A stretch of DNA of 63,770 nucleotides, the filler included, from Reticulomyxa filosa (Eukaryota; Protista; Foraminifera): NCBI GenBank assembly GCA_000512085.1. It is 16 parts of 16 records of this genome, joined end to end, with 100 filler letters (N's around TTAATTAATTAA, not from the genome) between each part and the next. Parts side by side here need not be neighbours in the genome. Positions count along the whole stretch, not along the records: positions 1 to 14,513 come from ASPP01011739.1; 15 more parts are not named here. The stretch is one strand, 5' to 3'. Position numbers and translations under genes: made by a program. Numbering within the stretch: the first letter of the stretch is position 1; each line of letters opens with the position of its first letter. Of this stretch, positions 50 through 14,513 are shown in pieces. Below the pieces are notes generated by a model that made no database searches, was not told where the DNA came from, and saw only the letters and a program-made list of their open reading frames with translations.

Positions 50-99
50 TATGTGTCTATTTGTATTATACACTGACGTGCTTTCTTTTTTTTTTTGAA

Positions 100-2485
100 T
101 TGGGCATGATATCAGAAAACGAAAAAAAACTGGTGATGACTGTCTTTACGAATGCGATTAACACATTAAGTGACGAGAACAAACAGCTGTTGCAGCTGAC
201 CGGTGCGGTGGAAATGCTGCAACGGGGAGTTGGGATTCACCACGCCGGTCTGTTGCCGATTTTGAAAGAAGTGATCGAAATACTATTTGCGGAAGGACTG
301 ATCAAAGTACTCATCGCCACGGAGACCTTTGCCATGGGTGTCAACTTCCCCACAAAGACGGTCATCTTCAGCAGCATTCGCAAATGGGACGGACATGCAC
401 GACGCTTCCTCACCAGCGGCGAGTACGTGCAAATGAGTGGTCGCGCGGGTCGACGAGGTCTGGATACGCGCGGCATTGTGATCATGTATGTGGATGAGTA
501 CATGCAGCCGGAAGAGGTGACGGAGATGCTGAAAGGACAGACTGATCGACTCGTCAGTGAGTTTCGCTTAACTTATCCAATGGTCATTCAACTGCTGCGG
601 ATGGCGGACGTGTCGCCTACGTATTTGCTGCAGCGCTCGTTTATGCATTTCCAGGCTTTGGAACGCACGCCCGAACTCACACATGCGCTGGACGTGTTGC
701 AACAGGAGGAAAAAGAGCTCATTGCTCAATACTTTTGCCAAGATCAGATCACCGATCATAACCACCACGTCGTGGACTTGCAAAAGATGGCCGAGTTTTG
801 CAGTCTTCAATCTGCTTGGACAGACCTGTCCATCGAATTCCAACGCGAGCAGTGTCAAATCAAATTTCTGCTGCCCTGGCTTAATCCCGGCAGGCTACTC
901 TTCGTATCGCAGTTGCAGCCAAAAAAGAAAATCTGGGGATGGGGCATCTGTTTGCGTTTCAAGAAGTCCGACTTCTATAATCCAGGTCTATTTTTTTTTT
1001 ATTTCAAGATAAATGAAACACAATATATATATGTATATATATATATATATATATACGCATATACGTATACAATATATACATATATGTATATATGTATATG
1101 CTTATTAAAAAAAAAAACTACTCTATGTAACATGCTTACTTACTATTCGTTTTGTACAATCTCAAAGGAAGTGCAAATGATGATGAAGACTTAAGGAGAG
1201 GACATGTTGTGGATGTGCTATTGCCATGTCACAGAGAATCTCCGGACGGACCTTTGCAACCAATCAGCTGTAAAGAGTGGTGTCAATTCATACTGAATCC
1301 CACCGACTGGACGGATGGCAAGACCTCCTCCATTCTGTTTCGGACCATATCGGTGACTCTTCACAGCATTGCGCGCGTGTCGATTGCTTGTGTAAATATA
1401 CCGTCTTCCATGCACTTGCATGCGCAAAGAGAGGGGTTGGCGGTGCGGCTGTTTGAATGTCTTCGCGCATTATTGTCCGATGAAAGCAACAAAAAGTCGT
1501 CGTGGCTTTACACAAGCTTGTCTACACTCGACTGTGAAAGGATTCAAGACGAACATTACCAAGCACCTTATCTGCATCCCATTTCCGATCTGCGTGTTCC
1601 CGCGTCCAAAATCAAAGCGACCATGACCAAAATGGAGCAGCTGCAGGAGTCGATACGTTGCCACGATGTTTCGAAGCAGCTAAAAAATGGAGCCAAAATT
1701 AAAGAGTATGTAATGCACTTCCAACGAAAGCAAGAACTCGACCGCGAAATTTCCAAAATTCAACAAGAGCTAGACGCATTGCAAAATAATGAGCACATTA
1801 TGTCACGACTCAAAGGAATGGAACAAGTTCTTGAAAAACTCCAACTGATCGACAGTAAACAACATACTGTCACTCTCAAAGGAAGAATCGCTTGTGAACT
1901 TTCATGCGCCGATGAGCTGGTACTTACCGAATTGTTATTTACTAACATTTTGCCTGAGATGAAATCTCCTGCTCATGTCAATGCTTTATTGTCATGTTTT
2001 GTCACTGAAGCAAAGGTATACGTCATTTTTAATGTGTTGTTTTTTTTTTTTTTTTTTTTAGCAAATTAATATTTCAACTGGCTTCATTATAATAGATACC
2101 AAAGGGTAGTACATCTGAATTGAAAAATGCGGAATTGGAAAAGTATCATCTGCTTTTGACTAGAAAAGTTCAACGTATTGCTAAAATATGTAAAAAATGC
2201 AAGTTGGAAATATATGTCAATCAGTACAAGAACAAATTCAGTTGGTTGATGATGGAACCCTGCTTCGCTTGGACAAATGGCAGCAAGTTTCAAGATATCA
2301 TCACTATGACCATACTACACGAGGGGTCCATTGTTCGGGTCATTCACCGATTGTTTGAGCTATTGAATGAATTGATACACTGCTCGCATATTATGGGAAA
2401 TGAACAATTAGCAAAACTCTTTGAACAATGCCAAAAGTTGATCAAGAGAGATATCATTTTTGCTCCATCACTATACCTTGGATAA
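100..2485 (+). CDS. MTR4: Mtr4/Ski2-family DExH RNA helicase, 5'-truncated; exons approx 100-985, 1168-2015, 2096-2485
   Basis: Motifs GVGIHHAGLLPILKE, ATETFAMGVN, GEYVQMSGRAGRRGLD, arch/KOW LNPGRL..WGWG, KGRIACE..DELVLTELLF and C-terminal EGSIVRV..IKRDIIFAPSLYL. GT-AG introns 986-1167 and 2016-2095 join the ORF pieces in frame. Confidence 0.93.
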
Positions 2486-2836: not shown

Positions 2837-4547
2837 ATGTCAAAAACTGAAAAAACCAAAAAAGATGAGAAAAATTCCAAATCAAAAAAAATAAAAAAAA
2901 ATCGACGAACAGACAATCAACTGAGTAATTTTACTTGGCCAGACTGTGTCCAGCCAAGTGGAAAAACGCATTGGGGGGAATGGAAAGAGACCAACGCGAA
3001 GCATATTTCTGTCAGATCTGACGATTACATAACTGTAAAAAAAATTATGTTTACATTTTTGTTTGTTTGTTTGTTGTGTATGCTTGCCTTACATACCAAA
3101 AAAAAAAAAAAGTAGTTAAATGGGTTACAATACTGACAACAAAACAAAAAATTGAATGTATTGAAAGAGTCGAAAAAAAATAAAGTCAAAACGATCATTA
3201 CTGAAATTAGCGTATCAAGAGTTTATTGAGGCAACTCTGGAAGAGTCGAGGCATATTGCCACGCACGAACATTCTTGGTACAAAAACAACCACACGAAAT
3301 TGCCAAAAGACACATTTCATTTGATTGTGAGTATTCAATTGCAAAGTATAAAAATAGCAATAATAAGTTATTATGTGATGCGAACGGACGATTCATTGTT
3401 TGGAGGAAGTGAAAGCAATGGAGATGACACGAGAGCGGAGAACGGGCTAGCCGTACCTGCTGTTGACAATGAAGCAGAGACGCTGAAGAGCAGCAGCAGC
3501 ATGGCGTCGAACAGTGAGTTAAAAACAAATGGAAACAATCCTATGAATGCTAGTAGCAGTGGTTTGAACACGGAAAACTTAAAATTATATAATGAGTTGA
3601 TGGAGTTACAAGAACACGAAAACACAGGTTTGCATCCAATTGCTAACTTTTTTTTTTTTTTTTTTAAAAAAACGGGATGTGTTTTCAATGTGTGTTGTTA
3701 TCACCATCCGTACACGCAATCTTTATCTATTTATTTATTTATTTTTTTTGTTTGTTATTCAATCCATTTGTTTTTGTCAATCAAACAAAAAACGAAATAT
3801 TTTTGTGAGTAGTGATTTAGACACATTCTGCTATGCTTCCTCTTTTTTCGCAAATTTTTTTTATGGATTTGTTATAACGGATTTTTTTTGGGAAAAAAAA
3901 AAAAAAAAAGAAGAAAAAGAAGCTGAAAACGTAAAGGTGAAAGAAAAAGAAGAAGATGAAAAAAAGTGCAACAACAAGTTGGTCATTTATGCCAAAAATT
4001 CATTACGCACCATTAGATGGAAATTTCTCTCTGCCAAACAATAATAACAACAACACTGATAATAACAGCATTTGGAAACAATTTTTAAGCAATAATCACT
4101 CGCTCATCCATGACCGTTTAAAATTGATTCCTCATGTTGTAAAATCACCTTGGTATTTGCCTATTCCAAGCAAACCAGTGCTGCTAGGAAAAATACTCTC
4201 CATCACGCACTTACCGCGGTGAAAATTATTTGGAAGTTGATATTGAAGCTGATTCCACCAAGTTAGCACAAAAAGTCGTCAAAGGTGCTCATGGTGTTAG
4301 CAAACAAATCATTGTAGATATTGTTTGGGTCATTGAAGGATGCAAGGCCGCTGAACTGCCAGAAAGGTGCTTGGGCGGTGTTCGCTTGTTTAATGTTGAT
4401 GTCACCAAAGTCACTCCTTTGAAAAAATGGGATGACGACACTTTTACCAAAAACTCTGCTGCAGATGAAACCGAAGAGAGCGAAAGCGAAGCTCTGCCTC
4501 AAGAAAGCTACGAAGTTGATGATAAAGAGATAATGGGGGTTGATTAA
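2837..4547 (+). CDS. EDR2 C-terminal-like (DUF1336) domain protein, multi-exon
   Basis: Motifs SVRSDDY..KKIKS..LLKL..HIA, RLKLIPHVVKSPW, KPVLLGK, YRGENYLEVDIEADS, IIVDIVWVIEG..ELPERCLGGVRL. Intron 3035-3167 is in frame. One extra T near 4211 breaks the frame. Confidence 0.8.
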
Positions 4548-4951: not shown

Positions 4952-6375
4952 TTATTGTTCATCATAAGTATCGGAATCACTTCGCGTATCAACAACGGCT
5001 TTTTTCAACCAGACTTTGCGATAAAGGATAGCAGAAATGAATGTCAGCCAATAGCAATGCAAGCAAAGCAAAACCCAAAGTCCAGGAATGAAGAAATACC
5101 AAGCCCAGTGACAAGAATGTGTAGGAACAGTGTCAAACGTGGAGGAAAGAACGACTTTCCAAGCGAAAAGGGACATGCGAACGAAAACCCAGTGTGAGAC
5201 AAAACAAACAAAAAAGAATTCCTTGAAGAACGTGTTGTGATGATATCCACTGACTTTGGCAGCAGCCAAAAAGAAATCGGTAGCATCGTGGCAAAACATG
5301 ACAATGGTGCCACATTCTGTCAATCCGTAGTGCCAAGAGAGCCAAATGAGACCGACTGTTGTCCAATGATGGAGAACCATTGCCTTTTTGGAGTTGAATG
5401 AAAAACAGAAGCAAACAAAGAGTTTAGTAGAAAGGGAAAGAAAGCCATAATTCTAACAAAAAAAATAAAAATAAATGAAATTACCACAAAGTCCTTTCTT
5501 TGATGATCAAAAAATTGGAAAACAGCACGGTGCATATGATATCCCGCACCGATGCAATAAAAGGCAGTAGTGTGCCATGTTTCCTGTTGTGGGAACTGGA
5601 CCCACAACAGTTTAGTGTCCCAAAACGAAGGCTGGCACCACATCACATAGCATCCAAACAGACCATTGAATGCCACAGTCAATCCTTTCCACACTTCTTC
5701 CAAATACTTGTGAATCAATTCTTCTTTTTGCACCTCTGTCCAATAATATGCCCAATACTTTTCCATTTGCTCCTCGTTCCATCCAGTTTGTTCACACCAC
5801 TCTTTCATTGAAATTATTCTTTTACCTTTATTTTTGTTCTTGCCTTCGTTTTCATGTTTGTCAATAAAGTTTTGAAGCTCTTTTGAATGCTTCGCATTTT
5901 CGTCACTTTTTTCTCGTTTTTCCAATTTTTCTTCCTTTTTTTTTTCTTTTTTTTTTCTTTTTCTTTTTCTTTTTCTCTTTCTTTTTCTTGTTCCAGATGC
6001 TTCAACTCTTTTCCTCTTCTCTTTTTCCATTCGCCGTGCAATTTTTCCAATTTTGCTTTGTCACGTGAGGAGTCTACAAAACTGGGTATCAGATTTTCAC
6101 CATATTCAGCTACTGCCAATCGTTTGGCTGTTCCTCGCAACTTGCTTTGAAGTGCGTGACGCCATAATGAACATACTCCCAACTTTTTACATTTTTTTCC
6201 CATTTGTTTTAGTTTACACTTTTAGCAAGGTTGTAAACGGGCAATAAAAACATACCCAAAAAGCGATCATCGCTGACAATTCCCACTGAGAATGAGTTGG
6301 TTGGATGTTTCTCACGTTTGGAAGACAAGCTTCCGTATTTGACAAACCGGTCACAAAATCTGACCAGCGCTCCAT
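4952..6375 (-). CDS. TLC/Lag1-family ceramide synthase
   Basis: Lag1 motif RKDF.|.MVLHHWTTVGLIWLSW..GTIVMFCHDATDFFL with conserved HH and DxxD; C-terminal DTRSDSD. Intron approx 5382-5485. Two apparent homopolymer frameshifts near 6220 and 5940. Confidence 0.85.
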
Positions 6376-7031: not shown

Positions 7032-10000
7032 ATGGAAGTTACAAAACAAAAATTAAAAGACTATTACAAAACTCAAGACAAATTAGTTCCATTATTTGAC
7101 GACCCTCAGCAGTCTGTTGACACTTGCTACGTTCGATTAGCCTTTGTGAGCCAACAATTTCAAGAAGAAAAAGTGAATATCCCAAATAAATGGAGTGACA
7201 ACGAAAAAAAAGAAGATGATGAAAAATGGCCAAATAAACTGAATTATTCATTAATAAATGATGATGATCAAAAAATAAGAGAATTGCAAGATATTTGGAA
7301 AATAGAAGAAAATGGATTGGAAACGCATCACATTAGTATTTATGGAGAAGCTGGAAGTGGAAAAAGTGTATTAACTCAAAGGATTACATATTTATGGGCA
7401 ACAAATCAAATGTGGAATGATCGATTTGAATGGTTATTACATATTCCTTTGAGAAAAATTTTCAATATTTTTGATAAAACTAGGAATAAAAATAATGATA
7501 TAATTAAAATGCAATGGTCAAAAATAATAAATGAATTACATATTCCTCAATGGAATATAGATGATACAAATATTGTATATTCACAAAATGGATTATTAGT
7601 ATTAGATGGATTTGATGAAATTGCAAATGAATTAAATAAGAAACCTGATTTAAAACAATGGTTACAACATTGTACTGTGAATAATGATAATTTTTGTGTA
7701 ATTATAACAAGTCGTCCTAATATAATGTGTTCATATTGGAATAATAATTCAAAAATATTTAATATAATTGGATTTCAATCACAAGATATTCAAAAATATG
7801 TTTATTCATATTTCCAAAATCTTAATTGTAATTATCAAGCAGATTTATTATTTAAAAAATTAAATAATAATTCTATTTTAGAATCATTAAGTCATATTCC
7901 ATTATATTTGTATTTATTTTGTTATTTGACAAAACAACAAATATTTGAAATAAAAGAAGAAAAAGAAAATAAAACTCAAGAAAAATTATTATTTGATGAA
8001 TTAAGTGATATATCTATTTCAAAATTGTATAAAATATTATTAGAATGTTATATGAGATGGAATTGGATAAAATGGAATGGAATAAAAAATCAACCAAATT
8101 CACAATCAATATTTAATATTTTTGAAATGGAAATGGATTATTTATCGCATATTGCATGGGAAGCATTAAAATGTGGACAATCTATCATTTCTTGTGAAAT
8201 ACAACAAAAAGTATTAAATTATATTAAAATAAAATATCCAAGAAAACATATTACAGTTATTTCTCAATGGTCTCGAATTAATTTATTTACATTTTTACAA
8301 GGACAAAAATTTATAAATTCATCCTATCCAATTGAATCAGTGTATTTTCCTCATTTAACATTTCAAGAATGGTTTGTTGCTTATTATTTGGTCAATTGTT
8401 TATATCAATCAAATGAATCAAATGATCATCAACAAGTATGTTCTATTTTAATTAATCAACAACTTACTCCAAAATATTCAGTAGTGATACCATTTATGGC
8501 AGGAATATTATATGATAATATTGAAAATAAGAAAGATTCATCAGGATCAGGTTTATTGTATTTTTGGAAATTGTTACATTCATTATCACCTCAACCGATT
8601 TTTATTCATCAAACTATATTATATATGCGTTGTCTTGCAGCTTGTAAAGCAGATACTAATAGTTTATTTCTTTCATCTCAACTCCAAAATTGTCATAAAA
8701 CACTCATTTGCTCATTCAAAACATTATTCATTTCTTGGATCAATTTTAACCAAGACAAAGATTATACTTATAATAAATTAGACAAACAGATCATGCATAA
8801 ATCAATTAATAATATAATGAAATTATATTTACCTAATTTACAACATATTCTTATTCATCCAGATATTCATTCATATATTATAGATCAAATTAAGATATTT
8901 CAAACTAATATGAACAGATTTGATGAAGATTATCTATTAAGAAAAGATTATATCAATATATTAAAATATTTGTGTATTTCTACAGAAACTACAAATAATG
9001 TTGTACAATGTTGTATGCAAGGTCTTCAATATTATCAAACTAATAATATATGTAATGAATATGCAAAATTAATTTGTGCAATAGCCATGAAATTGAATGA
9101 AAAACAATTAGATAATGCCATAATATTTTTTATGGAAGGATTTCAAGATAAAGTTATTCATGATATATGTATAGGATCACTTAAAATAATATTACAATAT
9201 ATGAATAAAAAGCAATTAGATGATACTTTTGAATGCTTAATGAATGAATATAATAATGAAAGATTAATGCGTTGTCATTTTTGTTTAAGTACACTTGAAG
9301 CAATAACAGAAAAATTAAGTGGAGAACAATTAAATAGTGCTTTGAAATGTTTGGTACAGGGATTAAATGGTCAAGTGAATACAATTTTTTGGCAATGTAC
9401 AAATGCAATTGAAAAATTTTTAATGAAATTAAGCGAAAAACAATTAAATGATACTCTCAATTTTTTGATTTTTCGATTAAATGATGATTTTGAATTCGTT
9501 CGTGATCTATGTGCATCAATAATTAAAACAATATCAACTCAATTAAATGAAAAACAATTAGATTATGTTTGTAAACATTTATTATCTGGAGTTGGACATA
9601 CAAATGAAAATATTAATCATTTACGTACAATATTATTTAGAGATATTTCAATACAATTAAATAAAAAACAATTAAACAATATTTATCAACATTTAATTGA
9701 TGGATTAATCAAAGATGAAAGAATATTTATTCGTCGATATTATGCAAAATTACTTGAGATACTTTCAATAAGATGGAATCAAATACAATTAAATAATATT
9801 TTAAAATGTTTAATGAATAAATCAATTGATGATAAAAATAAATGTGTTCGTTGGACATGTAAAGAATCACTTAAAGTTATTTTATTAAAATTGGATAAAA
9901 TACAATTAAATAATATTTTTCAATATTTGATAAAAAATTTAAAACATAAGAAACAAAGCATTTTCAAATTATATATTGATCTATTGATGGTAATTTCAAT

Positions 10001-12698
10001 ACAATTGGATACAATACAATTGGATATCTTACTTATGTGTTTGATATTAAATGGATCTAAATATAAAAATAAACATATTCGTTATTTATGCATGCAATCC
10101 ATTCAAAAACTTTTAACATTACAATTAAATGAAAAACAAATAAATGATATTTTTACATATTTAATGAATAGATCTAAAGATACAAATAAAAATATTCAAT
10201 ATTTATGTGCTGAAGCATTTGGAAAGCTTATACTAAGATTAAATAAAAAACAATTTTATAATGCTTGGGAATATTTAATAAATAAATTTAATAATAAAGA
10301 AGAAGATATTTTAGTTCGTATATCATGTGCAGAAGCTATTGGAATAATGTCAATGAAATTAAATCAAAAACAATTATTAGACAGTTTACAATATTTAATG
10401 AATGGATTAACTGATGAAGAAGTTGAAAATGAATTTCTCCGTAAATATTGTGCATATTCTCTTGAAAAGCTTATTAAAAAATTAACTACAATTAAAGCAG
10501 ATAAATGTATGATTATATCATTTATACAAGCATTTGAAACAATTCTAATAAAATTCAAGGAAAAACAATTTGATAAAACTCTTAAATATTTGCTTAATGA
10601 AATTAAAAATGAAGATTATGTTATGCGTTCTTATTCTATAAAATCACTTTCAAAACTTATTATGAAATTAAATGGAAAACAATTTGAAGATGCTTTTAAA
10701 GGTTTAATTGATGGATGTAAGGATAAAAATTTATGTATCAGCAATTTATGTGAAAAATCAATTGAAACAGTAGCATTAAAATTTGATAAACCACATCTGA
10801 ATTATATATTTGAATATTTAATTAATGGATTGAACGAAGAAGCTTGGGACATTCAATATTCATGTTTAAAAATATTAAAAACAATATCATTAATATTGGA
10901 TACAAAACAATTAAATTCTGCATTTCAATGTTTGATTGAGAAATTAAATAATTCAAGTTCTGATATTTGCGATTTATGTATAAACACACTTCAAACAATT
11001 ATAAAAAGATTAGATGATCAACAATTGTGTGCAGCAATGAATATTTTATTACAAAAATTGAAAAATATTCCTATAATAAGTGATAGTATTATTAAGACAT
11101 TATCAGATAATATGTGGCAACGTGTTATATTTTCTATGTTAAAAGGATATGTACAAACAATAGAAAAAAATATTGAAATAAAAACATTGGCATTTGGTTT
11201 GTTGATATTTAATCCCAACATTCTATTCCATTTCAATGATAAAAATAATGATATCAATCTTGATGCTTTCAATACATTGATAGATTGTTGTAATAAGCAA
11301 GCAATTGAATTAGATTTTCCAATTCAACAAAAATGGAATGGTTACGATGATATTCCCTATCCTTGTCTTACTGTTCTTTCAAATAATAATGAATATACTT
11401 TTTATAAAGCAATACAATTAGTTGATATAATACAACTAAATTTATTTAATGAACATGGAAAAACTCCTTTGCATTTGGCAATACATAATAAGCATTGGAT
11501 TGTTGCTAGTTATTGCATTGAACAAGGTGCGTGGATTGATGTTAGAGAAAGTACTTTAGAGGTAGATACTACACAAACTCCAATTGAATATATTACACAA
11601 TTAATTCATAAGATAGAAAATAAAGAAAATAACAAAGAATATTCAGAAATGATGGAAATGTGTAAATGGATATTGAAAAAACGTATTATATATCCAATAG
11701 AACAAATTAAATATGCTATTGATTATGTCAAAGATAAATTAATTAATAAAAATGATATCAATCAAATTATTAATGATAAAAATTATGAGATATTAATACA
11801 AGAAGGTGCAAGTTTCTTGTTAGGTGTAAATCAATTACAATTACAAGAAGTATTAATTAATAATAATTCATTTTGCCGGATGGAGAAAAAAAATACCAAA
11901 TTAATTGAAACTCAAAAAAAATTTGATGAAGAATGGTATATGAAAGCCTTTTTAATGTATCGAATATTTTTGTTGTTTAAAATATGTGTTCAATTAAAAC
12001 GATATAAAAGAAATCATATTGTATTACCAAAGAATATAAAATTTGAACAAATTTATGAAAAAGGAATGAAAGAATTACAAGTACAATTAACAACATATTG
12101 GGATTATATCACAATTAAAACATTTCACAAATTCCCAGATTTAATGGATGATTGGAGTTATAATATAGTTGATCGTTTAATGAATTTAAATCCAATATCA
12201 TTGAATGAATGTTGTGAAATGAGTTTAATGATTGGTCATCAAAATCATTGTATATATTTAAGTTTATGCAAAACATCTACCTCCATTTTGGTGCGGATTG
12301 ATAATCGACAGACGCAAATTATTCCATCCAATATATCCCATCCAAAGCAGATTATATCAATAAACAATAAGGATTATGAAGCAGTACAACCCTATTTGGT
12401 TGCATATTTTCCATCGAATAATTCAAATATCAATCAAAATAAAAAATGGTTGAAAGATTATATTAAAAATGCAATTACACTGGGGATGAAACATTTGTAT
12501 TGTAGTGATAATACTCCTCCTCGTGAAGGAAGTCCACCATCGATAGTAAATAATTGGCCATATCGTTCAATTCAAATTGATGCAAATAATTGTTATTTTC
12601 GGAATCACAATGTTGGATATCGTATTCGTTTGGGTGATGCCATTTATCAATGGTTTCGTGATCAAGAATATAAAAGCAATTTTGGCGTAACAAAATAA
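7032..12698 (+). CDS. NLR-like STAND protein: NACHT NTPase, HEAT-like repeat array, ankyrin repeat and putative C-terminal cysteine protease domain (1888 aa, intronless)
   Basis: Walker A GEAGSGKS (7344), Walker B LLVLDGFDE (7593), sensor IITSRP, HD1 HIPLYL, winged-helix FPHLTFQEWFVAYYL. About 39-40 aa repeats KLNEKQLD.....L...L.D....IR..C approx 9050-11090. Ankyrin GKTPLHLAIHNKHWIVASYCIEQGAWID approx 11450-11540. Confidence 0.9.
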   Translation: MEVTKQKLKDYYKTQDKLVPLFDDPQQSVDTCYVRLAFVSQQFQEEKVNIPNKWSDNEKKEDDEKWPNKLNYSLINDDDQKIRELQDIWKIEENGLETHHISIYGEAGSGKSVLTQRITYLWATNQMWNDRFEWLLHIPLRKIFNIFDKTRNKNNDIIKMQWSKIINELHIPQWNIDDTNIVYSQNGLLVLDGFDEIANELNKKPDLKQWLQHCTVNNDNFCVIITSRPNIMCSYWNNNSKIFNIIGFQSQDIQKYVYSYFQNLNCNYQADLLFKKLNNNSILESLSHIPLYLYLFCYLTKQQIFEIKEEKENKTQEKLLFDELSDISISKLYKILLECYMRWNWIKWNGIKNQPNSQSIFNIFEMEMDYLSHIAWEALKCGQSIISCEIQQKVLNYIKIKYPRKHITVISQWSRINLFTFLQGQKFINSSYPIESVYFPHLTFQEWFVAYYLVNCLYQSNESNDHQQVCSILINQQLTPKYSVVIPFMAGILYDNIENKKDSSGSGLLYFWKLLHSLSPQPIFIHQTILYMRCLAACKADTNSLFLSSQLQNCHKTLICSFKTLFISWINFNQDKDYTYNKLDKQIMHKSINNIMKLYLPNLQHILIHPDIHSYIIDQIKIFQTNMNRFDEDYLLRKDYINILKYLCISTETTNNVVQCCMQGLQYYQTNNICNEYAKLICAIAMKLNEKQLDNAIIFFMEGFQDKVIHDICIGSLKIILQYMNKKQLDDTFECLMNEYNNERLMRCHFCLSTLEAITEKLSGEQLNSALKCLVQGLNGQVNTIFWQCTNAIEKFLMKLSEKQLNDTLNFLIFRLNDDFEFVRDLCASIIKTISTQLNEKQLDYVCKHLLSGVGHTNENINHLRTILFRDISIQLNKKQLNNIYQHLIDGLIKDERIFIRRYYAKLLEILSIRWNQIQLNNILKCLMNKSIDDKNKCVRWTCKESLKVILLKLDKIQLNNIFQYLIKNLKHKKQSIFKLYIDLLMVISIQLDTIQLDILLMCLILNGSKYKNKHIRYLCMQSIQKLLTLQLNEKQINDIFTYLMNRSKDTNKNIQYLCAEAFGKLILRLNKKQFYNAWEYLINKFNNKEEDILVRISCAEAIGIMSMKLNQKQLLDSLQYLMNGLTDEEVENEFLRKYCAYSLEKLIKKLTTIKADKCMIISFIQAFETILIKFKEKQFDKTLKYLLNEIKNEDYVMRSYSIKSLSKLIMKLNGKQFEDAFKGLIDGCKDKNLCISNLCEKSIETVALKFDKPHLNYIFEYLINGLNEEAWDIQYSCLKILKTISLILDTKQLNSAFQCLIEKLNNSSSDICDLCINTLQTIIKRLDDQQLCAAMNILLQKLKNIPIISDSIIKTLSDNMWQRVIFSMLKGYVQTIEKNIEIKTLAFGLLIFNPNILFHFNDKNNDINLDAFNTLIDCCNKQAIELDFPIQQKWNGYDDIPYPCLTVLSNNNEYTFYKAIQLVDIIQLNLFNEHGKTPLHLAIHNKHWIVASYCIEQGAWIDVRESTLEVDTTQTPIEYITQLIHKIENKENNKEYSEMMEMCKWILKKRIIYPIEQIKYAIDYVKDKLINKNDINQIINDKNYEILIQEGASFLLGVNQLQLQEVLINNNSFCRMEKKNTKLIETQKKFDEEWYMKAFLMYRIFLLFKICVQLKRYKRNHIVLPKNIKFEQIYEKGMKELQVQLTTYWDYITIKTFHKFPDLMDDWSYNIVDRLMNLNPISLNECCEMSLMIGHQNHCIYLSLCKTSTSILVRIDNRQTQIIPSNISHPKQIISINNKDYEAVQPYLVAYFPSNNSNINQNKKWLKDYIKNAITLGMKHLYCSDNTPPREGSPPSIVNNWPYRSIQIDANNCYFRNHNVGYRIRLGDAIYQWFRDQEYKSNFGVTK

Positions 12699-14473
12699 AA
12701 TTGAAAGATAAATATTCATTTAATGTAATTATTTGTTTATTTTTATGTGCTCAAATAATATAAGATTATTTTCATTCTTTTACACAATATTCTTCATAAC
12801 ACGACAATTTTTCATCAACATTTGATCTATTTCTCAAATGAAAGAAACTGAAGTGATCACTAGTTCGATCAACTTCTTCACGCTTTTTTAAAATTTTTAT
12901 TGTTGAAAAAAATAATTATTTTGTAATTAAAAATCATAAAGTAAATTATTTTGTGTCGCAGTGTCATTTCTGCAGTCAAGTCATCACGTAATTCAACTTT
13001 GGATCCAAATCAATTCTAGAAAATCAGTAAATTCATATTGATTACTCAAATTGGAAATCTGAACGAAAGAAAATTGGAACAATTAGAGAAAGAATATCAA
13101 TAATTATGGAAATATCGTTCTTATTTGGACGGCAAAAGAAGAAATATCTTGTTATGTTTCATATTATTCAAACATAGAATTTTTTAAATTAAGGTACATT
13201 AAATTATCTATGCATTGCTAAATGTAATTTAATTTTTTTAACTTACTTTTTTTAAATAAAAACAGTCATTCTGTTAAAGATATTGCGAAAAAAGTAAAAT
13301 TATAAGTTAACTTTATAGTACTTGTGTTAAACTCGCGTTGCAAAAAGAAACTACAAATTATGTATTTTTTGTATCATTGTAACATAGATATATTATAATG
13401 TGTATATTGAATGTGAAATTGCAAAAAAAATTACTTTTTATCTATATATAAAAAAAGAAATTTTAAATAAATAAACAAACCAATAGCAACGATATAACTC
13501 GGTTTGGTAATATAAACTGAAAGCATTTATTTGTTTGATGCTGATTGATTATCCGAAAAAACAATAAACAAATATTAATTACATATAAATAATATTTGGC
13601 AACGAAAGATATTTGTGCATTACGAGTGCCTTAAGAAACAAGTCATGCAAACATAAATATATTCTAACTACATCGTTATAATATATTTTCATACGAACAT
13701 ACTTCAGTAAGTCGTTTCTTAGTATGTGTATATTCAGTGGTGCTTATATAATTGCAAATATTGTAACGCTTAATTGATCTTATTGTATATGATATTTATG
13801 TTTCTGTCCTGACTGCACAATTTCATTAGCATATATCGTATTATGATAGTTCCTAAACTTAGTTCCATACTTTTTACTAAAAAAGAAAAGTTAAAAATTT
13901 ATAATTTAAGTACATTTGAAAATTTGCCAAACAGTTGTACAATTGTTATAGATTTAAAACGATACGCTCTGTTTCAGAAATAGTTCTTGTAGCTACACTT
14001 TTTCGTTGTTGAACCTAGAAGTCAAGACATGGAACACTCACAAAATACTCGAAATGATACAACACAATATCTCCTATGCTCCGGTTAGTTTTAACTCCTA
14101 CAAACATTAAAAGTTATGACAGTTTGCCGCTTGTTTGTTCAGGTTTTGCAATTCCACTGGGGCTCTTTATCATATCTACATACCTCCGCAAGAAAGTCAA
14201 GTGATTCCTGCAAAAAAAAATGTACTTTTACATATGTAAGAAAAACTGAGAAAACCAAAAGCAATGAACCAAAAAAAAAAAAAAAGAATTTTCGTCGACA
14301 CCCTGCTCCGATAATATTTGGTCGCAGTATATCCCACTTATTGTTGGCCATAGTAACATTAGTCTGGAAATTGCTGGATATTGCTTCGAACCATAACGTT
14401 TAGTTTTAGATTTTTAAGATGATGTGTATATTGAGTTTTTCCTTTTTGAACCCTTTCAAATTTGTTTAACTTT

Positions 14474-14507
<34 letters not shown>

Positions 14508-14513
14508 GGGGGG

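Follow-up and report, generated by a model that had tools for sequence, protein, structure and literature searches.

A C-terminal AnkH/AnkD-like domain in an NLR-like NACHT-HEAT-ankyrin protein family of the foraminifer Reticulomyxa filosa

NLR-like receptors with enzymatic effectors are already known. Which output module such a receptor may carry in a foraminifer is the question raised by a locus of Reticulomyxa filosa. The window, i.e. the whole stretch of DNA analysed here (63,770 nucleotides, filler included, from assembly GCA_000512085.1), contains on the plus strand at 7032..12698 a single-exon open reading frame (ORF) of 1888 amino acids (aa) plus stop, which encodes an NLR-like protein of the STAND type (signal transduction ATPases with numerous domains). 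A sequence-only reading of the window had proposed that this NACHT-HEAT-ankyrin protein ends in a cysteine protease of the CE clan (Ulp1-like). The tail was here found to be a distinct domain with near-invariant residues, and its predicted fold matches that of a domain found in two Legionella effectors, AnkH and AnkD. An AnkH-like thiol hydrolase that serves as the output module of a STAND receptor is, on balance, the probable explanation. New are the AnkH/AnkD-like module, its placement after a HEAT sensor, the size that the family reaches in a foraminifer, and its connection with intracellular bacteria and with a core effector of Legionella. A literature search, with subscription papers outside its coverage, returned no paper pairing Reticulomyxa filosa with NACHT and no paper describing an AnkH-like tail domain in NLRs.

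A conserved domain at the end of the protein

The tail comprises the last 329 aa of the protein and consists of a helical part (aa 1560-1725) followed by a beta/alpha core (aa 1726-1888). The R. filosa assembly that was searched comprises 101.9 Mb in 50,809 contigs, and all copy numbers derived from it are lower bounds. The tail matched at least 123 places in this genome (402 first-look candidates), and with these copies and a well-scored structural model the earlier view of the tail as a domain in its own right held. The conservation of single residues was counted in alignment A2 (42 sequences, 22% mean column identity) and in a remote set of about 60 homologues at about 20% identity, for which all profile matches were aligned to the profile. 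The features of the domain are listed with their positions in the window and with their counts in A2 and in the remote set.

11709..12695, plus strand: C-terminal AnkH/AnkD-like domain, aa 1560-1888 (from genome copies, profile matches, AlphaFold2 model and structural matches)
12072..12074, plus strand: E1681, glutamate in the helical part (A2 42/42; remote 60/61)
12246..12248, plus strand: H1739, candidate general base (A2 42/42; remote 60/60)
12294..12305, plus strand: R1755-I-D1757-N1758, R-x-D-N motif (A2 R 41/42, D 42/42, N 40/42; remote Asp column 59/61, Asn column 60/61)
12300-12305, plus strand: codons of D1757 and N1758
12573..12575, plus strand: Q1848, candidate oxyanion-hole glutamine (A2 40/42; remote 58/62)
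12588..12593, plus strand: N1853-C1854, candidate nucleophile in an N-C motif (Cys in A2 41/42; remote 62/62)
12591-12593, plus strand: codon of C1854
12627..12629, plus strand: R1866, nearly invariant arginine 12 residues past the cysteine (A2 41/42; remote 61/63)

In A2, E1681, H1739 and D1757 form the only invariant columns; R1755, N1758, Q1848, N1853, C1854, G1862 and R1866 are among those in which 90% or more of the sequences agree. The single A2 sequence that departs from the C1854 column carries its cysteine one residue earlier, most of the family reading G-N-C, and the glutamine lies 5-6 residues before the cysteine. The family signature can be written as G-[YHW]-x-x-H-x-x-Y ... R-[IV]-D-N-[LR]-[GW] ... 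Q-x-x-G-N-C-V-x-x-x-H-N-V-G-x-x-x-R. The residues that the sequence-only reading had singled out (H1739, D1757/N1758, Q1848 and C1854) were all recovered in the 1888-aa ORF at the positions it gave, and they proved to be among the approximately ten best-conserved positions of a divergent family, with few exceptions in R. filosa. The His, Asp, Asn, Gln and Cys are also kept among 23 R. filosa copies, but at a mean column identity of 68% these have much else in common. The bare motif is no evidence, because a loose version of it (H..D/N/E..Q..C) was present in 719 of 2000 shuffles (36%) of the 165-aa tail; what goes beyond chance is the conservation of the residues and the fold match, not the motif alone.

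The fold of the tail was predicted twice. A first model, which used a shallow paralogue alignment, had a predicted local distance difference test score (pLDDT) of 74.5 with the Cys loop unresolved, and a better AlphaFold2 model with a diverse alignment reached a pLDDT of 87.6 and a predicted template modelling score of 0.89. In the latter, H1739 is the first residue of a strand (180-188, model numbering), D1757 the last residue of the next, antiparallel strand (192-198) and C1854 the first residue of the penultimate helix (295-308), and the predicted topology is CE-like. The long gap between Asp and Gln, for which an insertion had been assumed, is real; in the model it is filled by three further strands and a helix.

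The better model was compared exhaustively with 48,161 PDB representatives. The top match was Legionella AnkH (6MCA, Z 13.6, 236 residues aligned, root mean square deviation 4.2), followed by AnkD/LegA15 (7EW8, Z 11.6, 213 residues aligned; 7EW8, 7KJ6 and 7XQL span Z 11.0-11.6), and the highest unrelated chain reached Z 5.5. Chains of the CE clan were aligned over 141-179 residues, with Z-scores of 5.1 for XopD, 4.8 for NEDP1, 4.7 for SENP7, 4.5 for NopD and 4.0 for SENP1 and an Ulp1-like chain. Re-comparison with the top 1000 chains of Foldseek left the order unchanged, with SENP2, SseL and a poxvirus core protease (3.9) as additional matches. Foldseek alone ranked LegA15 first with a non-significant E-value, and the poorer first model had already put AnkH and AnkD on top. 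Rows for PH domains and GRK2 from that first model were dropped as noise after the better model was available, and a caspase-like (CD-clan) reading of the His...Cys order was discarded, no CD-clan structure being among the matches. Searches of the ESM Atlas by features and by shape yielded no named or convincing cluster; a ShET2/Toxin_15 row (0.79) was too weak to use. Judged by the model, the tail has the fold of the 'cysteine protease-like domain' of AnkH and AnkD, a distant CE-clan-like fold. The fold match is strong and goes without detectable sequence homology to AnkH/AnkD; common descent is therefore no more than likely.

The domain of AnkH and AnkD has been described as XopD-like or CE-like, and the likeness of AnkH to a domain of RavZ was remarked by its authors (PMC6712400). 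The putative AnkH triad H243/D258/C324 lies in the motifs rGHa, D/NRg and GNCSWANV, with the His at the start of a strand, the Asp ending the next strand and the Cys at the loop into the penultimate helix (PMC6712400). The pocket was described as closed, with the triad out of its active configuration, and triad mutants lose function in infection (PMC6712400). The window protein resembles AnkH in its ankyrin repeats followed by the domain, an arrangement found in most homologues also, in the order and fold placement of His, Asp and Cys, and in the short motifs G-H, D/N-R-g and G-N-C...N-V, the R-x-D-N of the tail being similar to D/N-R-g. Unlike the window protein, AnkH has neither NACHT nor HEAT and is a secreted bacterial effector of 460 residues; moreover, the stretch from Asp to Cys is about 30 residues longer in the tail, and there is no similarity detectable by HMMER. 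From topology, motif likeness and consistent alignment offsets we infer that H1739, D1757 and C1854 are the probable equivalents of the AnkH triad. With the C48 enzymes (Ulp1/SENP, NEDP1, XopD, NopD) the tail shares the order His, Asp/Asn, Gln, Cys and the Gln 5-6 residues before the Cys, whereas the spacer between Asp and Gln measures about 40 residues in C48 and about 90 in the tail, and the tail family has extra invariant Glu and Arg residues.

The tail family is linked in this way to AnkH, which is among the few effectors conserved across Legionella, and the chemistry of its relative AnkD is contested. The invariant His and Asp, together with the Cys across the wider family, provide new evidence on the dispute about AnkH/AnkD chemistry.

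Receptor architecture and possible function of the tail

The NACHT-HEAT-ankyrin architecture that had been read from the sequence was borne out by Pfam, which returned NACHT, HEAT repeats and one Ank repeat.

7332..7820, plus strand: NACHT NTPase domain, aa 101-263 (Pfam PF05729, E 5e-16, 59.4 bits against a cut-off of 26.7)
7344..7367, plus strand: Walker A GEAGSGKS, aa 105-112 (read from the sequence, intact)
7593..7619, plus strand: Walker B region LLVLDGFDE, aa 188-196 (read from the sequence, intact)
8979..11126, plus strand: about 18 HEAT-like repeats of about 38 aa, aa ~650-1365 (Pfam HEAT/ARM; boundaries approximate)
11430..11546, plus strand: ankyrin repeat(s), aa 1467-1505, directly before the tail (Pfam Ank/Ank_2/Ank_3)

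The NACHT domain was located at the same place by the genome profile search. Several Pfam matches of the HEAT/ARM type fall between about aa 800 and 1350, the HEAT-like repeats being outlined by an L-N-x-K-Q-L marker that recurs every 36-40 aa, and the Pfam Ank repeat at aa 1475-1505 aligns with the Ank repeat of the homologue P0047. The start of the ORF is colinear with the bacterial homologues P0047 and P0099 from residue 2-8 on; because of this shared start there is almost no domain N-terminal to NACHT, as had been noticed before. The protein has the marks of a STAND/NLR protein, namely a NACHT domain that passes the Pfam threshold and has both Walker motifs, and a repeat array C-terminal to NACHT that varies among paralogues. 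Among full-length paralogues the identity amounts to 54-70% in the NACHT/NOD part, 51-67% in the tail and 30-43%, with many gaps, in the HEAT array. Read from these sequences, the pattern points to a diversifying sensor between constant switch and output modules.

Animal and fungal NLRs as well as bacterial NACHT and Avs proteins are likewise composed of a NACHT switch, variable repeats and a constant enzyme-like module, and NLR/STAND receptors with enzymatic effectors also form large, diversifying gene families. The window protein differs from them by its HEAT repeats, in place of LRR, WD40 or TPR, and by an enzyme-like module that stands after the sensor, with no N-terminal effector. The unit of ankyrin repeats and tail probably acts as the constant effector module that gives the output, with the hypervariable HEAT array as ligand sensor. 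In the homologues P0114 and P0117, which read Ank-domain-NACHT-HEAT and domain-NACHT, the domain unit has an effector-like placement N-terminal to NACHT, i.e. the canonical effector-first order.

With an AnkH-like thiol hydrolase as output module, a ligand would be bound by the HEAT array, and NACHT would exchange its nucleotide and then oligomerise. The Ank and tail units would be clustered by this, or they might be uncovered from a closed state comparable to the closed AnkH pocket. The Cys1854/His1739/Asp1757 centre, with Gln1848 at the oxyanion hole, would carry out thiol-dependent hydrolysis, and the substrate would most likely be a peptide or isopeptide bond in a protein of the host or of an invader. 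The tail may be catalytically active on a peptide or isopeptide substrate and may be activated by oligomerisation, and the system may have a role in immunity or cell death.

Several results weigh against this explanation. Pfam, searched with the last approximately 390 aa at E up to 10, gave nothing but a sub-threshold DUF3244, the NCBIfam scan of the tail gave no match, and PDB sequence searches with phmmer and with the profiles A1, A2 and A3 (E up to 10) gave nothing relevant, neither AnkH nor AnkD. By the same searches the tail defines a family that is in no domain library and that has an active-site-like signature. The catalytic cores of R. filosa's own C48 genes were collected and aligned (A4), and hhalign of A2 against A4 returned a probability of 0.1. 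Foldseek against the PDB gave no match at E <= 0.001 with either model, and the direct matches to the CE clan, at Z 4-5 only, lie in a range where chance arrangements occur. The proposed equivalence with the AnkH triad is at the level of topology, motifs and aligned ranges. In a few R. filosa paralogues, P0008, L011 and L012 among them, the Cys is replaced by Ser, Ala or Gly or the His by Tyr, and in-frame stops interrupt many of the assembled copies, so that some members of the family are probably inactive or pseudogenes. Moreover, no protease activity of AnkH was detected in vitro (PMC6712400), and LegA15/AnkD was reported to bind and hydrolyse GTP, with C361 activating the water (PMC9757750), so that the chemistry of the closest relatives is unsettled.

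Membership in the Ulp1/C48 family by sequence was ruled out, as Peptidase_C48 (PF02902) had no match to the tail at E up to 10 and the hhalign probability was as low as given above. Because these C48 tests were negative, the relation to the CE clan is confined to the order of the residues and a weak signal from the fold. From the proposal of a CE-clan (Ulp1-like) protease, the residue order, the CE-like topology and a place next to AnkH and AnkD as top matches were retained, while the C48 assignment by sequence and a strong direct match to the clan were not. The protease, deubiquitinase or deSUMOylase activity that had been suggested along with it is not supported or is left open, no such activity being known for the nearest relatives and one of these being a reported GTPase.

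If the tail were an atypical GTPase or nucleotide switch of the LegA15/AnkD type, a water activated by the Cys would attack GTP, and partners would be recruited in a GTP-dependent manner without cleavage of a protein. LegA15/AnkD is the second structural match (Z 11.0-11.6) and a reported Cys-dependent GTPase; it shares with the window protein the ankyrin repeats with a C-terminal domain and the Gln five residues ahead of the Cys, and in the tail family a Gln-x4/5-Cys motif and the nearly invariant R1755 and R1866 are present. In LegA15, for which H268-N290-C361 had earlier been proposed as a triad, C361S abolishes the GTPase, H268A has little effect, Q356 contacts the phosphates, and the GTP pocket is formed by R291, R408 and K367, the last being Arg in most species (PMC9757750). 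Unlike the window protein, LegA15 is a stand-alone effector, and its pocket residues R291, K367/R and R408 appear, by spacing, unconserved in the tail family. When matched by spacing, the residue that follows the Asn (LegA15 R291) is Leu in 18, Arg in 13 and another residue in 11 of the 42 sequences, and the position Cys+6 (LegA15 K367) is Asn, Gln or Ser, with Lys in 1 of the 42. A GTPase as the function of the whole family is disfavoured because the His, like the Asp, is invariant in the tail family, yet H268A barely affected the GTPase of LegA15. A His-Asp-Cys mechanism is favoured over it family-wide because His and Asp are invariant and the positions of R291 and K367 are mostly non-basic, and the GTPase is here considered rather unlikely. 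The His-Asp-Cys centre might also perform thiol chemistry other than an isopeptidase reaction of the Ub/SUMO type, such as acyl transfer, as in YopJ-like acetyltransferases, or lipid/Atg8 deconjugation, as in RavZ. The CE clan includes acetyltransferases with the same residue order, AnkH was likened to a domain of RavZ by its authors, the tail has no sequence similarity to C48 enzymes, and E1681, R1755, R1866 and N1853 lie outside the classical C48 signature. However, no YopJ-family structure is among the matches listed, in which the CE members are ubiquitin-like-protein proteases, and two homologues, P0121 and P0082 (Holosporaceae bacterium 'Namur'), combine a U-box (E3 ligase), Ank and the domain in one protein, a possible hint that the tail domain acts on the ubiquitin system. 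Such other thiol chemistry is regarded as unlikely.

The tail could in principle be non-enzymatic, a conserved module for interaction, oligomerisation or ligand recognition in which the polar residues have structural or binding roles. Activity has been demonstrated for no member of the tail family, the pocket of AnkH is closed with its triad out of the active configuration, and NLR effectors do not typically stand behind the sensor repeats. Nevertheless, His, Asp, Asn, Gln and Cys are nearly invariant in about 60 proteins of many architectures that are only about 20% identical, the pattern expected of a catalytic centre; in addition, the model places the Cys at the N-terminus of a helix and AnkH triad mutants lose their function in infection, which makes a non-enzymatic tail quite improbable. 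That the ORF is not a working R. filosa gene at all, but a contaminant from bacteria, the product of a wrongly joined contig or a repeat-family copy in decay, is highly improbable. The ORF has 23.6% GC and 13.5% GC at third codon positions (GC3), against 36-44% GC and 43-54% GC3 in the helicase exons nearby, the closest relatives outside Reticulomyxa are bacterial, many assembly copies have stops, and the RNA-sequencing look-up for the ORF listed no run, which also counts against the thiol hydrolase explanation. On the other side, a stop-free run of 1888 codons at this composition has a chance of about 1e-85 and all conserved residues are kept; because of this probability the gene is real, and the ORF is certainly maintained as a genuine gene. 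Contamination is unlikely because a gene for an Mtr4-like helicase and one with a TLC domain, both eukaryotic and split by introns, lie on the same contig as the ORF; furthermore, the bacterial homologues have 41-49% GC, and more than 100 paralogues are distributed over many contigs.

Distribution and origin of the family

In the R. filosa genome the NACHT profile matched at least 103 places, the paralogues being spread over many contigs. A free-living foraminifer with more than 100 NLR-like genes, in which HEAT sensors are combined with an enzyme-like tail, extends the range of eukaryotic NLR architectures to Rhizaria. A profile search of 1.84 billion representatives gave 142 matches, many of them remote (E 1e-53 to 1e-4), and the whole domain was spanned. 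Besides the architectures described above, NACHT-HEAT-Ank-domain was found in P0047, HEAT-Ank-domain beside a separate NACHT gene in P0033 and P0038, NACHT-Ank-domain in P0084 (a metagenome-assembled genome (MAG) of Midichloriaceae) and in P0099 (Candidatus Jidaibacter acanthamoeba), and WD40-Ank-domain-Ank in P0090. A predicted complex of the tail with R. filosa ubiquitin scored 0.00 and, being without controls, counts neither way. Concerning ubiquitin itself, the R. filosa genome contains at least 150 ubiquitin matches, and an extra Ala links the monomers of polyubiquitin (...RGG-A-MQ...), e.g. in L019 (G000:C19824), which we take to be the insertion described for Cercozoa and Foraminifera.

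P0038 is encoded on a 53-kb marine TARA scaffold (L016) with three NACHT/HEAT/Ank-tail paralogues in tandem. The neighbouring genes encode Hc1, a TLC ATP/ADP translocase, EF-P, RNase E/G and ribosomal proteins, a context that is Chlamydiota-like. A MAG of Parachlamydiaceae has two tandem copies of the tail family, and a degenerate DNA pattern for G-N-C-[VI]-[VI]-x-N-[HY]-x-[VI]-G hit 21 loci, of which only one, in the Parachlamydiaceae MAG, was a true family member. Of 151 genomes in a sample of Chlamydiota, 16 contained a match; these 16 all belong to the larger genomes (1.7-3.3 Mb), and no match was present in any listed genome of about 1.1 Mb. Additionally, partial matches to the core were observed within open frames of 3000-4300 aa in the environmental Chlamydiota G085, G120, G139, G104, G064, G122 and G101.

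The window protein and P0047 are colinear and 27% identical both in the NACHT module (633 aa aligned, E 2e-60) and in the Ank and tail part (435 aa aligned, E 2e-40), and the window protein is colinear with the Jidaibacter protein (P0099) from residue 2 on. The tail family is not specific to protists, because colinear homologues exist in intracellular bacteria; the suggestion of an undescribed protist innate-immune receptor is thereby narrowed to an immune role, which is plausible, for a protein type that bacteria have as well. In a quick maximum-likelihood tree with midpoint root, the R. filosa copies form one clade (support 100), which is nested with P0033, P0040, P0038 and P0047 (support 99) and adjoins a NACHT clade of Rickettsiales. 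The nesting among bacterial homologues therefore points to an inter-domain transfer of a complete receptor gene, and colinear homologues are carried by amoeba-dwelling Rickettsiales symbionts as well as by environmental Chlamydiota. The simplest reading of the sequences would be a whole-gene transfer between intracellular bacteria and the foraminifer, in one direction or the other, followed by expansion. A wider and more tentative scenario, which is possible though doubtful, is that the whole NACHT-HEAT-Ank-enzyme gene passed between protist-dwelling Chlamydiota/Rickettsiales and the foraminifer, in which it grew to more than 100 copies as an immune or cell-death repertoire; AnkH would have its counterpart on the host side in the output domain of this gene, and the fold would be an ancient, catalytically active conflict module of hosts and pathogens. 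If so, the foraminiferal and bacterial NLR versions would offer a route to the long-sought substrate of AnkH.

The surroundings of the gene

Three further coding features were found upstream of the ORF in the same part of the window.

61-2485, plus strand: Mtr4/Ski2-like RNA helicase, C-terminal exons (Helicase_C, MTR4 beta-barrel and stalk, DSHCT)
4230-4547, plus strand: EDR2_C fragment (match to the C-terminus of ENHANCED DISEASE RESISTANCE 2)
4952-6030, minus strand: TLC-domain (TRAM/LAG1/CLN8) gene, split across two overlapping ORFs

The helicase exons are spread over three reading frames, and the gene therefore has introns. Within the region 7032-14513 the NLR ORF is conspicuously rich in AT: its flanks have 25-26% GC, and the tail-coding regions of seven paralogues have 28-35% GC, compared with 23.6% for the ORF in the window. 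The AT-richness of this ORF could be due to a local isochore or to a mutation bias acting on the window copy. At the end of the piece (14468-14513) about 24 T are followed by about 18 A and then by GGGG, a run that looks like a contig-end or library artefact and not like genome sequence.

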